A stretch of 64,000 bases of DNA from Bugula neritina (GCA_964035545.1 OZ037767.1:14386798-14450797), one strand, 5' to 3'; counted from the stretch's first letter, positions 16,601-63,329 are shown. Numbers and translations are program-made. Notes: generated by a model not told the origin, from the letters alone.

Positions 16601-19600
16601 TCTTTCTAATAAATGTTATGAATTTCATTCAGTATTATCAAAACAAGTGACTGCAATCAGTTGATATTCCTTGTTGAATGTTTGTATTATATGGGTACTT
16701 TTCTAGTATATTTCTGTCAGGTTTGATATTTTCTTCTGTAACATCTACTTTCTTTATGAGTCCAACCAGTATAAGCAGGTTTATGATATGAGACGATATG
16801 ATATGATACACTGCTGCTTTGTAAGCATATAGATGGTATGGTACTGTAGTACATTGCTCTGTAGTAAACATATACATATGATATGATACTGTCATACAAT
16901 GCTGTGTAGTTAGCATATATATGATACATTGCTGTGTTTAGACACGAGAAAGACTATGACAGAACACTACAAGAACTCACCTCATCTGTAAGGCAAGGAG
17001 TTCCCAGGCAAAGCAACTCCTTGGAGAACGTAAGGACCCCCCCCCCCTTTTAATCTAATCTCTCAATAGTATCATGTGTTAGACCTCAGCTAATGTATGA
17101 ATTGTGCATGAATATAAAAATCAACTTCCATTACATGTTTTTCGCAAAATCCAATAGAAATTTTCATCTTTCTAAATCAGTTGCAAGTAATAAATTACAT
17201 TTAATTTGATATATTAAAAAGCATTAAAGCTGTATTGTTCAATTGTTTTATTTCAATTGTTCATTGCATTCTGGTACAAAGAGAATTTCCACCATCATTT
17301 GAAACTGTACTATAAACTAAACAACTTCTCTCCTTTTAACAGATATGCAATAAACAATTGAAATAAAACAATTTAGCAATACAGATTTAATGTTTTATTC
17401 ACTATTTTTTGTAATCGAGCCAAACATTAATTGTCACTTTAACTGACCTAGAAAAAACTTTATATTACAACTTTGTATATGGTGTGTTCGAATATTGAAA
17501 TTATGTTAATTTTTAATTATTTTTTTTGCCTTACGCTGAGAGAGGTGAGATGCATTATATATATATACATATATATATATATATATATATATATATATAT
17601 ATATATATATAATAATTGTATCGTGAGATTTTTAAAAAACAGCGATAAAAAAGTGCTCAAATTATTATGTGTATAATAATGAGCAATTATATTATTGAGG
17701 AAAAGAGCAATTTAATTATATAGATGTTGTTTTATTGTACTACTAATAGTTTCATGCCTCTTCGGCACTCCTCAGGCACAATATTGTGCCTGAGGAGTGC
17801 CGAAGAGGCATGAAACTATTAGTAGTACAATAAAACAACATCTATATAATTAAATTGCTCTTTTCCTCAATAATATATATATATATATATATATATATAT
17901 ATATATATATATATATATATATATATATATATATATATATATATATATATATATATATATATACATATATATATATATATTATTGAGAGCTGTGGGTGCA
18001 GAAGTCAGCCTTTACGTTGAAATCTGTGTTTCTGGTGTGACTTTGTATGCTGACTCTTTGCTCACTGATGTCTACTGGTAACAGGTTGAAAAGCGACTAG
18101 AGAGGAAGTTAGAGAGCATTGCTACTAAAATAGAGAACAGACAGAAGGTGGACTCTGTAGCCTCAGCACCCCTTACAGCCGCCACCCTTTCCAAATCTCT
18201 CACTGAAGTTAGCAGAGTTTATGCTATTAGTTTACATGATATTAGTCATTAGTCGAAGTCAGCTTTGTCATATATCAATGCTGCCATATTTTAACATTTG
18301 AATGAAATGATTTGTTAATATGGTGCACTGTGGCGTCTTTAGCTCTCTAGTAGGTAATAATATACCTGTGTTAATATTAATCTATATTAATATACCTGTA
18401 TTGAACTACCTGTAAGAATATACCTGTATATGTGCTGTTTTGTGACAAATTCAGTTACAATATTTTGTAATATTATTTATGCCAACACTGAAAGACCCGC
18501 TATGCAGCATATAAAGTCTTTCGAAGTATTTGTGGTAGTCTATTGAAAGTATTTCTGTCTCGTATCATATTGTGTAATCTTTCTGAAGGCGCTGAAAGTT
18601 TCGCAATCCAACCTCTCGGCACCGCCACCCGCTCCTAGTCAGTTACCTTTAGATAACCTTCACCTTAAGATTTCCGATATCGAGACGGACAAGAGAAGAC
18701 TCAACAATGAGCTCGATTTACTTAAGCAGAAGCACGATCAAGGGGAGGGAGCGCGCAGAGCCCTTTCTCAACAGGTTTGTGTGGGATTCATAGACTATTA
18801 TTGTATAGAAAGTCTGATAATATCTGACAACACCCTCCATTATGGTAATACTTTAGCTCTTACCATCATTTCATGACCTTGGAAGTTTTTCCTAAAATAA
18901 TTGATTTATATATTGCTAAAATTAGACTAATAGTAATTTTCATTCAATTTATAAAATTGATTTAAAAGATTTTGCTCAAGGGGCTATGGCTACATGCACT
19001 TTATTTCTATATTTAATTTATTGCTGGAGTTATTTGCAGCATCACAAATATTTTCTCTTACAATAAAATTTTCCATCAATTTAGATATTTTTACCTGGCG
19101 TTGTGTCACAAATGATAAAAACTGATGAATTGCAGAATTTACTAGTATTAGTAGTAAGGGTACTTACTTGCCCACATCGCATATACACACTGTATCTACT
19201 GAATGTATTTACAGGTGGAGGATTTAAGAGCGAAACTACGCGAAGTAGACGATGAGCGACATCGAGCTCTGCGGTTGGCCGAAGAGTTCCGAGATTCTGA
19301 AAAGAAGTCAAGGAAAAAGCAGCGTGATGTCACACGGGCATCTGAAGATGAGAATCAACGACTTCAGGTATTGAGTGAGTGAGTCAGTGAGTGAGTGACT
19401 GAATGAATAACTAAGCAGGTGAGTCAGTGAGTGACTACTGAGTGAGTGAGTAATTGAGTGAGTGAGTGAGTGATTGTGCAAACATTGTTTGGTAGACTTG
19501 TTGATGGGTTGCTCTAATTTTTGTAATCAATTTTTAAAAGTGTTCTACAATAATTAATTTTCTTATAAAATAGTTACTGGTGATTTGTCAGACTGTATGT

Positions 19601-60700: not shown

Positions 60701-63329
60701 ATTATACATGCATAGGATTTGCATAAGTTGACAAAAAAAATTGCAACAAAATAGGGTTGAACCATGACCAACCAACTCGTCGCTGACGCCTCTAACCTCT
60801 GGACCACGCACTATATGAGTCACTATCATTACATAAATATTTCGCTCGCAAATGGGTTATAATTATTAGGCTGTCAATTCATGTTGATAGTAGTCAACTG
60901 TTGGAATAGTCTCGGGTTACTAGCAAAGCTAATGGTTTTGAACAAATAACCCAAAAGTTTAAAAATAAGTAGCTTGCGTATTACTAGCTACAAAAACAGG
61001 TCTGAAATAGACTGGTAAAGCAAGCTCTTATTGTAGAATTTGCAGATGTGCTCTAAAATAAAACTTAAACTGTATGCTGTTACATAAGTATTTGTATGCG
61101 AGAGATAAATGGACATTACTGAGTTTCTGGAAAACAACATACTTGAAGTTAACTTTGACAATGGTGTGTTATTTTCATCATAGCTAGCCTATAGCATAAA
61201 TCTCTAATCGTATGAATCTTTATGAAGCCCACAGCTCATGTAAGGGTGGCAATGTAATTTGAAATGAACAATCATGTTGCTGCATTGTGTCTAAGGTATA
61301 TTAGAGAGCAAAATTTGGTTTTACTAGCCTACCCCAACGGCATTCTACAATGCAGCTTATATGCTGGCAGTTGTAATAAGTACTGCCAATAGCAAGGTTA
61401 CTATCACTGCTAGCTCTGTGCAGCATGTAACCTCTTGAATAATTGCGCCAATTTTAAACTCTTGGAAGTTGGCCAAGTTATCATATCGCAGCCAGCCACC
61501 GGAGACAAAGCATCAGAGCTATTCATATAATATTATACTAATGCACTTGGTAGCAGAGTGGCTAATCTAATATAGTTCATAGTTCAACACCCTTTACTTT
61601 GGGAATACAGCCTCTTTTTTTAGGTTTACCTTACAAAGCATGAAAATATCTAAACTGATATTCTGATAATTTAGAGGTACATTTTGAAAACTAGGTTAAT
61701 TGCACTTGTTTGCACAACAACAATAATAAAATAGATATTATGCAGTATAATAAAAACACACATAATACTATATAATATATTATAATGATAATAATATAAT
61801 ATTATAAGTACCATTACTGCATTTTATAAATCACATGATTGCCAAAAAAAATGTATCACAAATTTTGTAATTATACATCAAAAATAGAACTAGCTAGGCA
61901 GCAGGTTAGAATAAAGTAAATTTTTAAAACATGAAATCATGATTTGACTATTGTTTTATTTAGGCCAACCAACCTAGGAATACAAGATTGGGTTTTAGCT
62001 GACAGTTTATAACATTTAGCTTTTGAGCCAGCAGCACTGGCACTTGTGAAGTATAGGCAAAGTTAGTGAAGCGAGACTAACAAGCACTCGAATACAAGGA
62101 ATATTGAGACACAATAACAAGTCAGGAGCGTATAAATTGAAAAGAATGTGGAAGGGGGACTATGTTTTTCAACAAGCTATAACTTAAACATGAATTGGCT
62201 TTTGAAAAAAATAAAAAAGTATATTGGAGAACATAAGTTTCTTTATCTTTTCATATTTTTTTTGTTCCTGTGACATTCAACCTGTTCGAGCTATCAGTGG
62301 AACATTGTTCATATAGAACATAAAGCACCTGGCAAAGAGCCAGAAAATGAAAAGTATGACCTTAAACCAACTGTGATATATATATATAGACATATATTAT
62401 GTGAACACATAGTGGCTAATTTATCTGACGAGTGCACATCGTTCTTGTGTACGAAACTACTAGTAATAAATGCCATTATATTAATCAAATCTCATATTAC
62501 TTCTTCTAATATATATATATATATATATATATATATATATATATATATATATATTTAGACATATATTATGTGAACACAATTTTCATTTTCACTCAGGACT
62601 AACCCATTAGACTACCATAATCCCCGAAATATCTGCTTTGAAAACCCAATAGATACTGTATCAAGAACTTTGGTCACTACGCTAGACAGGTCTCTGCTAT
62701 TTACTCCTATACCAAAGTGTGGCTGGACAAGCTCGATGGTTCTATTCTATCAGAACTACAATATTAGTTACAGCTCTCTTTCAAGGTATATGAGTCAAGC
62801 CTGTTTTGAAGTAAACCTGAAACTCTTGTTGGGAGTTCTTTTTAGAAAGGACTAAAATAACTAGTACATGCCAGAAATACACTTACAACTAATATGATTA
62901 TAATATGTTGAATTGTCTTTTCAAAAAATTTACTGGTGTATAGTTTAATTAACTCTAATTATTAGATTTTATTCCTGTTAGCAACTTTCATGATTATGCT
63001 ACAAAATTTTTACTTAATGTTTATAATGTGTTAAATTTCCATATGTTATTTGCAAGCACCAAGTCAGATATGGCAAAATTAATTTACAACATTTGATTTC
63101 TTATTGAAATCCCTTCTTAAAATGTTTTTCTTAAAATTTGAACAAAGTGCCTGTCTTTACATACCTGAATCAGTTCTTAATGAAAAAGACTATAGCCAAA
63201 GGGTTTCAAAAATAGCATATTTTACAGATGGGGCTGGTTTTCACCCTTCCATAAAGTCAACATGAAAATAGCTTCTCTTGAGTGCCCTGGAGATTGGATA
63301 AATTACAGAGAGAGGGTATTAATTGTGAG
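57711..63329 (+). CDS. Carbohydrate sulfotransferase (CHST/Sulfotransfer_2-type), partial, continues beyond window; possibly disrupted
   Basis: Exon 57711-57838 (type II membrane anchor), 58889-58978 ([13 protein letters not shown]), 62597-62785 (PIPKCGWTS, 5'-PSB-like), 63228-63329 (RERVLIVR, start of the 3'-PB-like motif). The last three are phase-consistent; the link to the first exon is problematic. Confidence 0.62.
59464..59705 (+). mobile_element. Hammerhead-bearing inverted-repeat element inside (TA)n (element B)
   Basis: 81-bp arms 59464-59544 and 59625-59705 (2 mismatches) enclose an 80-nt loop containing the ribozyme; long (TA)n on both sides. Confidence 0.9.
59544..59608 (+). ncRNA. 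Type I hammerhead ribozyme B (C.A mismatch next to cleavage site)
   Basis: CUGACGA 59557-59563; stem II GUGCACA-ucguucu-UGUGUAC; GAAA 59585-59588; ACU-acu-AGU; GUA 59595-59597; stem I GUGGC-ua-AUUUAC / AUAAAU-GCCAU. Confidence 0.85.
59829..62375. mobile_element. 2.5-kb non-autonomous DNA transposon with CACAG termini (CMC/EnSpm-like) inserted in (TA)n
   Basis: 20-bp perfect terminal match CACAGTTGGTTTAAGGTCAT / ATGACCTTAAACCAACTGTG extending as ~125-bp imperfect TIRs; no transposase ORF seen. Confidence 0.8.
62409..62479 (+). ncRNA. Type I hammerhead ribozyme C (intact stems)
   Basis: Stem I AUAGUGGC-ua-AUUUAU / AUAAAU-GCCAUUAU; CUGACGA 62425-62431; stem II 62432-62452; GAAA 62453-62456; GUA 62463-62465. 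Confidence 0.9.
62410..62555 (+). mobile_element. Hammerhead element C with (TA)n tail and 23-bp target-site duplication
   Basis: Direct repeat TAGACATATATTATGTGAACACA at 62387-62409 and 62556-62578; body nearly identical to 59544-59642. Confidence 0.85.

Follow-up and report, generated by a model that had tools for sequence, protein, structure and literature searches.

Hammerhead-bearing insertions in the window

The window analyzed, a stretch of 64,000 nt from Bugula neritina (GCA_964035545.1 OZ037767.1:14386798-14450797), contains three short insertions, designated A, B and C, each of which carries a hammerhead ribozyme motif and ends, as previously described, in (TA)n (Table 1). Copies were sought throughout the genome (216 Mb). 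All comparisons were made among natural copies, without building a consensus, repairing a frame or reconstructing an element.

Insertion A is a head-to-head pair with arms of 171-172 and 95 nt. Its core forms a perfect 95+95 palindrome without a spacer (17688-17782 versus 17783-17877), and the ribozyme motif therefore appears on both strands. A preliminary description had placed A at 17688-17877; the right end stands, but the left arm extends to 17612, so that the insertion occupies 17612-17877. The exact palindrome recurs at a second genomic locus, C9:3521592-3521781.

Insertion B is also a head-to-head pair, with an 81-nt inverted and a 161-nt direct arm. The left arm includes the tail and lacks the hammerhead, which is located within the 80-nt non-duplicated part of the right arm and in which position 2.1 is changed from U to C, disrupting the first pair of stem I. 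The 5' inverted partial copy, earlier noted as frequent in insertions of Penelope-like retroelements (PLEs), of which it is a hallmark, is represented by the perfect palindrome in A and by the 81-nt inverted arm in B. Insertion C is a solo copy, whose 5' end lies 3-5 nt upstream of hammerhead stem I and whose 3' end corresponds to the tail-less reverse transcription (RT) start site (approximately position 98 of 161).

Table 1. Coordinates of insertions A, B and C and of their component parts in the window.
Feature	Position	Strand	Evidence
(TA)n microsatellite left of A	17556..17611	.	read directly
A left arm, reverse complement of last 171 nt of family A unit (2432-2602)	17612..17782	-	170/171 identical to L062 unit
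76-nt tail within A left arm	17612-17687	-	match to family A unit
Hammerhead in A left arm	17741-17775	-	motif and model match, 69.5 bits; predicted cut between 17741 and 17740
A right arm, family A unit 2432-2526, without tail	17783..17877	+	95/95 identical
Hammerhead in A right arm	17790-17824	+	motif; predicted cut after 17824
(TA)n microsatellite right of A	17878..17985	.	read directly
TA-rich left flank of B	59357-59463	.	read directly
B left arm, reverse complement of last 81 nt of family B 3' end (81-161 of 161-nt query)	59464..59544	-	80/81 identical to L066
B right arm, last 161 nt of family B PLE	59545..59705	+	158/161 identical to L066
Hammerhead in B right arm	59557-59597	+	motif; predicted cut after 59597
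(TA)n right of B	59706..59830	.	read directly
Left target-site duplication of C	62376..62409	.	direct repeat 97%; 23 nt exact, 34 nt with one mismatch
C, solo family B copy, 99 nt	62410..62508	+	comparison with family B 3' end
Hammerhead in C	62425-62465	+	motif and model match, 76.9 bits; predicted cut after 62465
(TA)n tail of C, merging into right target-site duplication	62509..62554	+	read directly
Right target-site duplication of C	62545..62578	.	direct repeat search

Hammerhead structure and covariation

The presence of a full type I hammerhead core in A, B and C, as originally proposed, was borne out by a search with the pattern CUGANGA-N(12-26)-GAAACUANUAGUA, which yielded four matches in the window (those of Table 1, with A on both strands) versus none in 100 dinucleotide shuffles of it. 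A purpose-built covariance model recovers the same four hammerheads at 69-77 bits. Comparison of the sequences likewise agreed with the earlier account of the stems: stems I and II differ throughout between A and B/C with pairing kept, and the self-complementary stem III, ACUA-N-UAGU, followed by an A (the GUA site), is common to all three.

Covariation in stems I and II was also detected among genomic copies, across six element families represented by 15 sequences. The hammerhead core (CUGANGA, GAAA and a cleavable NUH triplet) is invariant in this set, and 90.6% of the stem I/II cells are paired; in the slid-partner control, 20-49% of the cells were paired. Compensatory (both-side) changes were found in 13 of the 18 pairs, and none of 500 shuffles matched the observed values. 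Stem III is ACUA-N-UAGU in families A, B and D, while families C3 and F carry 10-nt palindromes.

On the basis of these features, the hammerheads of A, B and C can be classified as PLE-type minimal type I ribozymes with a palindromic stem III. As stem III is palindromic and not long enough to close, we propose that the hammerhead would be active only upon pairing of two copies. Cofolding of two copies extends stem III in a predicted dimer, which for C exceeds two monomers in calculated stability by 9 kcal/mol, and the action of PLE hammerheads as dimers has been published (PMC4209133; PMC6765202). According to the reports on these ribozymes (Cervera & de la Pena 2014, PMC4209133; Lunse et al. 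2017 via PMC6765202), they too are of type I with a long stem II (5-6 bp) and a palindromic stem III formed only between two copies, and they too include many covarying families per genome and opposite-strand pairs. The stem I described there comprises 4-5 bp, versus 6-11 bp in the B. neritina copies, for which cleavage is predicted; unlike those described, moreover, the B. neritina hammerheads are often back to back, within about a dozen nt.

The Rfam hammerhead models, which had been suggested as a check, gave no hammerhead match in the window at the gathering threshold or in two sub-regions at E<=10, and the best match of RF00163 (Hammerhead_1) over the whole genome reached 25.4 bits versus a cut-off of 34. 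Such a miss would be expected if RF00163 needs a closed stem III. The sole Rfam matches at A, to hairpin-shaped miRNA models, were dismissed as an artefact of the palindrome.

Host gene context

On either side of insertion A lie plus-strand coiled-coil ORFs, at 16100-16312 and 18082-18249; a plausible plus-strand splice acceptor at approximately 18083 follows some 100-200 nt downstream of A and about 100 nt downstream of its right (TA)n microsatellite. For B and C, no support for a surrounding host gene model was found in the window, and Pfam and PDB searches with the ORF downstream of C (62574-62852) were blank. The original assertion that all three insertions are intronic, with the ribozyme in sense orientation, is thus plausible for A only, where the orientation is trivial because A is a palindrome with the ribozyme on both strands; for B and C it found no supported gene model.

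It could be argued that sense intronic hammerheads cleave pre-mRNA and thereby regulate host genes, in keeping with the setting of A, and that B and C, which lie 2.9 kb apart on one strand with identical palindromic stems III, could dimerize, as the predicted stability of the C dimer would allow. We regard such host action as very improbable. A transcript through A is predicted to fold into a perfect 95-bp hairpin of -173 kcal/mol, versus about -12 for the ribozyme stems, and the ribozyme would be buried within it. The mutation in stem I of B, the unsupported gene model around B and C, the hundreds of identical copies at unrelated (TA)n sites and the poor cleavage of published PLE hammerheads even as dimers (PMC4209133) also argue against it.

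Coding elements of families A and B

The insertions had been interpreted as two lineages of non-autonomous, ORF-less ribozyme retroelements tied to (TA)n. The two lineages and the (TA)n tie are upheld, but the non-autonomous, ORF-less character is not, as both lineages are continuous with the 3' UTR sequence of coding elements; the window copies are devoid of an ORF only because they are 5'-truncated. Recent mobility, also claimed at the outset, is evident from the 95-mer of A, which is 100% identical at no fewer than 45 other sites, and from the right arm of B, which is 98-99% identical to at least 40 other copies. At least 206 (A) and at least 258 (B) candidate copies were counted in the genome.

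An autonomous partner, as had been anticipated, was identified for each family. The element units are approximately 2.6 kb in length, with an open frame of 715 amino acids in family A and one of 714 in family B. The family A unit of 2602 nt, situated between two direct 95-mers in L062, carries a single 707-aa ORF that is intact in at least two full-length copies. In family B, the ORF's C-terminus is located immediately upstream of the 161-mer in many of the copies, and four copies combine stop-free 714-aa frames with a B-type hammerhead downstream. At least 984 candidate PLE ORF matches were detected in the genome, and several further families (49-55% identity) have intact frames of 708-717 aa.

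Pfam searches of the ORFs themselves returned no reverse transcriptase or GIY-YIG domain match, and a PDB sequence search was likewise blank; these domains were therefore assigned from motifs and homologues. The family A ORF contains RWK (RRLRWKV), DKT (VPSDKTNNFY), FDVIDFYPSI and YRDD, followed by VIY..YIG near the C-terminus and, later, CxxC and CxH. Its linker, CNCRKKESC, fits CxCX5C, and a family B copy has CNCRNVKTC; the CCHH motif of other PLE endonucleases was judged absent by eye only. Among 2403 homologues at E<1e-5, some carry precomputed PF01541 or PF00078. The single ORF thus appears to encode a telomerase-like reverse transcriptase with a C-terminal GIY-YIG endonuclease.

The Hydra clade of PLEs is characterized by RWK, DKT in place of DKG, a CxCX5C linker, absence of the CCHH motif, a length below 3 kb, insertion at (TA)n and hammerheads of canonical type (PMC8557442). 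The B. neritina elements are below 3 kb with a single ORF, have the putative reverse transcriptase and GIY-YIG modules, carry RWK and DKT, and insert into (TA)n; by size, motifs, target and hammerhead, families A and B are provisionally assigned to this clade. The likeness to the described members (Craig et al. 2021, PMC8557442) extends from the small single-ORF unit, canonical hammerhead and (TA)n insertion to tandems that are partial, partner copies that are inverted and 5'-truncated, and a tail on one side. The tail itself measures 63-76 nt in the B. neritina families, versus 30-40 nt quoted for PLEs generally (PMC8557442). A, B and C are, in all likelihood, dead, 5'-truncated insertion products of two young autonomous Hydra-clade PLE families. 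Their anatomy, identity to coding elements, (TA)n targeting and covariation were observed directly.

Insertion footprints across the genome

The proposed association with (TA)n was confirmed on a genomic scale: in 30 loci of each family, examined for (TA)5 or longer at the end, the 3' ends abut (TA)n in 29 (B) and 26 (A) cases. Family A uses two 3' ends, at unit positions 2526 and 2602, and 14 of 15 distinct head-to-head pairs contain one of each. Among the best 150 genome model matches, 32 head-to-head pairs have hammerheads joined within about a dozen nt, and approximately 16 have longer arms; arms of every length, long ones included, also occur. In five other families, the 5' end falls between -20 and +14 nt from stem I in 9 of 17 bystander copies.

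The long inverted arms of A and B and their TA-repeat setting would also suit foldback or MITE-type DNA transposons that target TA, the hammerhead-like motif being incidental. Such an origin is hardly conceivable and is already contradicted by C, which lacks inverted arms, bearing instead a tail of (TA)n and a duplication of 23-34 bp, and by the collinear arrangement with coding retroelements: the arms are 3' ends of a reverse transcriptase-encoding element, of unequal lengths and with two alternative ends. The covariation, in addition, supports a selected RNA fold.

A different origin, in line with the original proposal, would make the short copies genuinely non-autonomous mini-elements akin to retrozymes or SINEs, which PLE enzymes would copy, after transcription, as units in their own right. 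The excess of pairs joined near the hammerheads, the 5' ends near stem I in the five other families and the second locus of the exact A palindrome are consistent with this origin, and retrozymes have been proposed to derive from PLE pLTRs (bioRxiv 10.64898/2026.07.22.740005). We nevertheless consider it improbable, given that the sequences are identical to the 3' ends of coding elements and lie collinear with them, and that the long arms are of every length. Junctions are also of at least 11 different kinds in 16 B loci, and since they differ from locus to locus, the copies represent independent events rather than one amplified stub. Head-to-tail tandem arrays of the short unit were absent from the window and from the other copies compared, in which (TA)n or inverted arms lie between one copy and the next. 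Animal non-LTR retrozymes (Cervera & de la Pena 2020, PMC7229834; Li et al. 2026 preprint) resemble the insertions in their type I hammerhead, their non-coding copies, and their coexistence with and presumed mobilization by PLEs. They are, however, units of 150-450 bp in head-to-tail tandem with circular RNA expression (PMC7229834), whereas A, B and C are non-tandem and collinear with coding elements.

Two further ideas were rejected. A trailing reverse transcriptase unable to pass the leading one would never leave a longer tail arm, yet the tail arm is longer in about half of the pairs, which excludes a strict rule of this kind. Cleaved RNA was discarded as the template because the ribozyme is present in full in the arms, which do not begin at the cut site. 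Separately, B in the window has the tail on both arms, against a strict model of one tail per event, and plain random 5' truncation leaves the pile-up of 5' ends at the hammerhead edge unexplained.

Proposed insertion route of the PLE families and its significance

Protein-coding PLEs that insert into TA repeats are already in the literature, and recognition of (TA)n-embedded hammerheads as Hydra-clade PLE footprints would alone be routine annotation; they are most probably neither a new ribozyme device nor host regulators. The mechanism of PLE integration is still poorly understood, however, and in vitro study has so far been confined to one vertebrate element. A genome with hundreds of very young, near-identical insertions from several families provides a clean natural record of this process, with priming of both strands, a pair of start sites, a tail on one side only and junctions falling at the hammerhead.

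The 3' UTR contains the minimal type I hammerhead, after which come approximately 40-50 nt, a first RT start site, the tail of 63-76 nt and the second of the RT start sites. We infer the following order of steps, in which any cleavage is predicted. The element endonuclease would cut both strands of a (TA)n microsatellite, and each 3'-OH would serve as primer for the reverse transcription of element RNA, beginning at one or the other start site. The two cDNAs would extend toward each other, stop early and join by template jump or microhomology, generating a head-to-head pair flanked by (TA)n, as in A and B. Where only one strand was used, the outcome would be a solo copy tailed by (TA)n, with a long duplication of the target, as in C. 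The hammerhead would be cargo of the element, its dimer requirement being suited to the tandem transcripts of the element and not to the isolated copies of the window.

In vitro, PLE protein nicks and extends both strands and uses two adjacent internal RT start sites, the interval between which equals the genomic tail (PMC11167929). The footprints of A, B and C match this published biochemistry. The element concerned, Poseidon of the green anole (Frangieh et al. 2024, PMC11167929), comes from another clade than the B. neritina families, but shares with them the nicking and extension of both strands (here deduced from footprints), AT-rich targets, the paired start sites with their tail-length interval and a hammerhead some 50-130 nt upstream of them.

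Poseidon shows no strand preference for the start site (PMC11167929), whereas one site per arm was found here in 14 of 15 head-to-head pairs. Along with the fact that roughly two thirds of the head-to-head pairs are joined at the edge of the hammerhead, and with the similar pattern in six families, this ratio may hint at a PLE mechanism as yet undescribed, which we advance tentatively and think unlikely on balance: a single event would use both RT start sites, one per target strand, and the preferred template would begin at the 5' edge of the hammerhead, either as a discrete short RNA or as a module protected by protein. If so, the hammerhead would mark the 5' border of a minimal retrotransposition module, and each autonomous element would continually produce its own palindromic mini-copies. 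Unlike those of Poseidon, the B. neritina start sites are rich in AU and border on (TA)n, which makes priming by microhomology possible.

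Hammerhead motifs in the window and the genome

At all three insertions (A, B and C) in which the preliminary description had noted hammerhead ribozymes, the observation was borne out. The strict pattern CUGANGA, 12-26 nt, GAAACUANUAGUA had four matches in the window, one on each strand of A and one each in B and C, versus none in 100 dinucleotide shuffles. Insertion A contains a perfect palindrome of 95+95 nt with no spacer, and the ribozyme motif therefore occurs on both of its strands. The Rfam check suggested for these motifs was negative: none of the hammerhead models matched within the window, whether at the gathering threshold or at E<=10; a whole-genome search with RF00163 gave nothing above its cut-off. 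A covariance model built from our own alignment recovered all four window sites at 69-77 bits, and gave a match at each of the 150 candidates scored genome-wide. The only Rfam reports at A were hairpin-shaped miRNA models, an artefact of the palindrome.

The alignment comprised 15 sequences from six families, and the hammerhead core was invariant throughout. The three-helix structure was paired in 90.6% of cells, versus 20-49% when the partners were slid by 1-3 columns. Covariation among genomic copies, on which the preliminary description had made its reading depend, is present, with changes on both sides in 13 of the 18 pairs. The observed values were reached by none of 500 shuffles, a figure that overstates significance, since the structure was derived from the same sequences and the families are related; the slid-partner controls provide the fairer test. 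In types E and F, the base of stem II has a U.U mismatch.

Stem III consists of ACUA-N-UAGU or of a 10-nt palindrome, for which self-closure is impossible, and is predicted to be extended when two copies are cofolded. This corresponds to the minimal hammerheads published for Penelope-like elements (PLEs), which act weakly as dimers (PMC4209133; PMC6765202). Type G, a seventh hammerhead, combines a stem II of GGGG/CCCC with a GUC site and with a stem III that is closed (4 bp); its 3' end lies almost directly in (TA)n.

Coding elements related to the insertions

The genome searched comprises 216 Mb in 321 contigs. The A 95-mer has at least 206 candidate copies there (at least 45 of them at 100% identity), and the B 161-mer at least 258 (98-99% identity). 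A full family A unit of 2602 nt with a single 707-aa ORF (locus L062) was identified from pairs of A copies spaced by 2.6 kb, and the C-terminus of a related ORF was found directly upstream of many genomic B copies. Uninterrupted frames of 715 aa (family A) and 714 aa (family B) occur among the copies, and four B-type hammerheads were located just downstream of such open frames. Moreover, a protein search of the genome revealed further families with intact frames at 49-55% identity, for a total of 984 candidates. The 3' UTRs of these PLE families carry six distinct hammerheads (A, B, C3, D, E and F).

Since the short A and B copies match the 3' ends of coding elements, the two supposedly ORF-less, non-autonomous lineages of the preliminary description were not supported; on sequence comparison, A, B and C are truncated copies of autonomous PLEs. 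Its link to retroelements was correct, A and B/C representing the 3' ends of RT-encoding PLEs. The kind of element is already known.

The ORF contains RWK, DKT, the RT motif YRDD, the linker CNCRKKESC (CxCX5C) and VIY..YIG, followed by CxxC and CxH. These traits, together with a length below 3 kb, canonical hammerheads and (TA)n insertion, define the Hydra clade of PLEs (Craig et al. 2021, PMC8557442), and the assignment of the present elements to this clade on sequence traits is well supported but not proven. In all, 2403 database proteins matched the ORF at E<1e-5, with a top identity of 58%; the named homologues were from one bivalve and one bryozoan, and some of the 2403 matches were annotated with PF01541 or PF00078. 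Pfam and PDB sequence searches with the ORF itself returned no match. Four additional families of Hydra type carry their own hammerheads, and family F has two alternative 3' ends, with and without a tail.

Features in the window and at other loci of the genome (unit positions refer to the 2602-nt family A unit)
Feature	Location	Strand	Description	Identity
A, palindrome	window 17688-17877
A, left arm	window 17612-17782		reverse complement of unit positions 2432-2602	170/171 nt
A, right arm	window 17783-17877		unit positions 2432-2526, head to head with left arm	95/95
One-tail pairs, family A (examples)	L063, L065, L070, L072, L075, L078, window 17612-17877
Type G hammerhead	L002:~1200-1260
Type G hammerhead	L070:900-962	-
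Type G hammerhead	L031:1187-1249
Type G hammerhead	L037:1864-1926	-
Families C3, D, E, F	L082, L081, L087/L097, L090-L092		Hydra-type PLEs
Decayed family B copy	L066:3270-3430		core GAAA changed to AAAA
Tailed family A copy	L039 (G000:C6:3883141 region)		adjoins (TG)n
Rfam tRNA match	window 45176-45246	-	35.2 bits (gathering 29)

Anatomy of the insertions and (TA)n targeting

With both arms mapped, insertion A is wider than first reported, and (TA)n adjoins it on both sides. Insertion B consists of the last 81 nt of the family B 3' end, reverse-complemented and joined to the last 161 nt. The 5' end of insertion C lies 3-5 nt before stem I and its 3' end at approximately position 98 of the family B 161-mer, where (TA)n follows; a direct repeat of 23-34 bp occurs on both of its flanks. 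The proposed association with (TA)n was confirmed, the 3' ends adjoining it at 26 of 30 A loci and at 29 of 30 B loci. One tailed family A copy instead adjoins (TG)n, which shows that the targeting has exceptions. At L066, an older, decayed family B copy has its ORF in pieces.

Junction regularities and proposed mode of insertion

Work with purified protein from a PLE has shown that both strands of an AT-rich target are nicked and extended, that reverse transcription starts at two adjacent internal RNA sites whose interval corresponds to the genomic tail, and that insertion in vitro needs no ribozyme (Frangieh et al. 2024, PMC11167929). The two alternative arm ends observed here (2526 or 2602 in family A, ~98 or 161 in family B) fit these two start sites. 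Extension from both target strands would yield head-to-head pairs, in which two inverted copies are joined at their 5' ends, while C would represent a single-strand outcome with a staggered-cut duplication.

Of the 15 distinct head-to-head pairs of family A, 14 combine an arm ending at 2526 with an arm ending at 2602, the sole exception being L034/L035. Insertion B, of family B, departs from this pattern in that both arms carry the tail. Genome-wide, and at loci L001-L060, the 5' ends of PLE copies cluster around the 5' edge of stem I, at a distance of no more than ~20 nt. By our own count from coordinates, 64 of the 150 best model matches fall into 32 pairs with a join of about a dozen nt or less; about 16 other pairs have 171-2873 nt between the ribozymes. 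Hammerhead-edge joins account for about two thirds of head-to-head pairs. The counts for both this and the one-tail pattern come from ranked searches and carry the bias of that ranking. The same pile-up was evident in partner and bystander copies of six families, and the junction sequences vary among loci, which indicates independent insertion events. The pile-up could reflect an RT stop, a short RNA used as template, or a module that protein protects. Both the one-sided tail (PMC8557442) and opposite-strand ribozyme pairs (PMC4209133) are mentioned in the literature; no description of the strength of the one-tail and hammerhead-edge patterns was found in a non-exhaustive search.

Host context

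Insertion A has coiled-coil ORFs of the + strand on either side and a plausible acceptor near 18083, which makes an intronic position plausible. No gene models were supported around B and C in the window. The proposal that all three ribozymes lie sense-oriented in introns was not supported. A transcript through A is predicted to form a 95-bp hairpin (-173 kcal/mol) that would bury either ribozyme. The hammerhead of B, which carries a U-to-C change at position 2.1, is predicted to lie in the loop of an 81-bp stem, and that of C to be unobstructed. Nothing indicates a host function for A, B or C. Elsewhere in the window, an Rfam tRNA match with three mismatched acceptor-stem pairs could represent a tRNA pseudogene or a tRNA-derived repeat.
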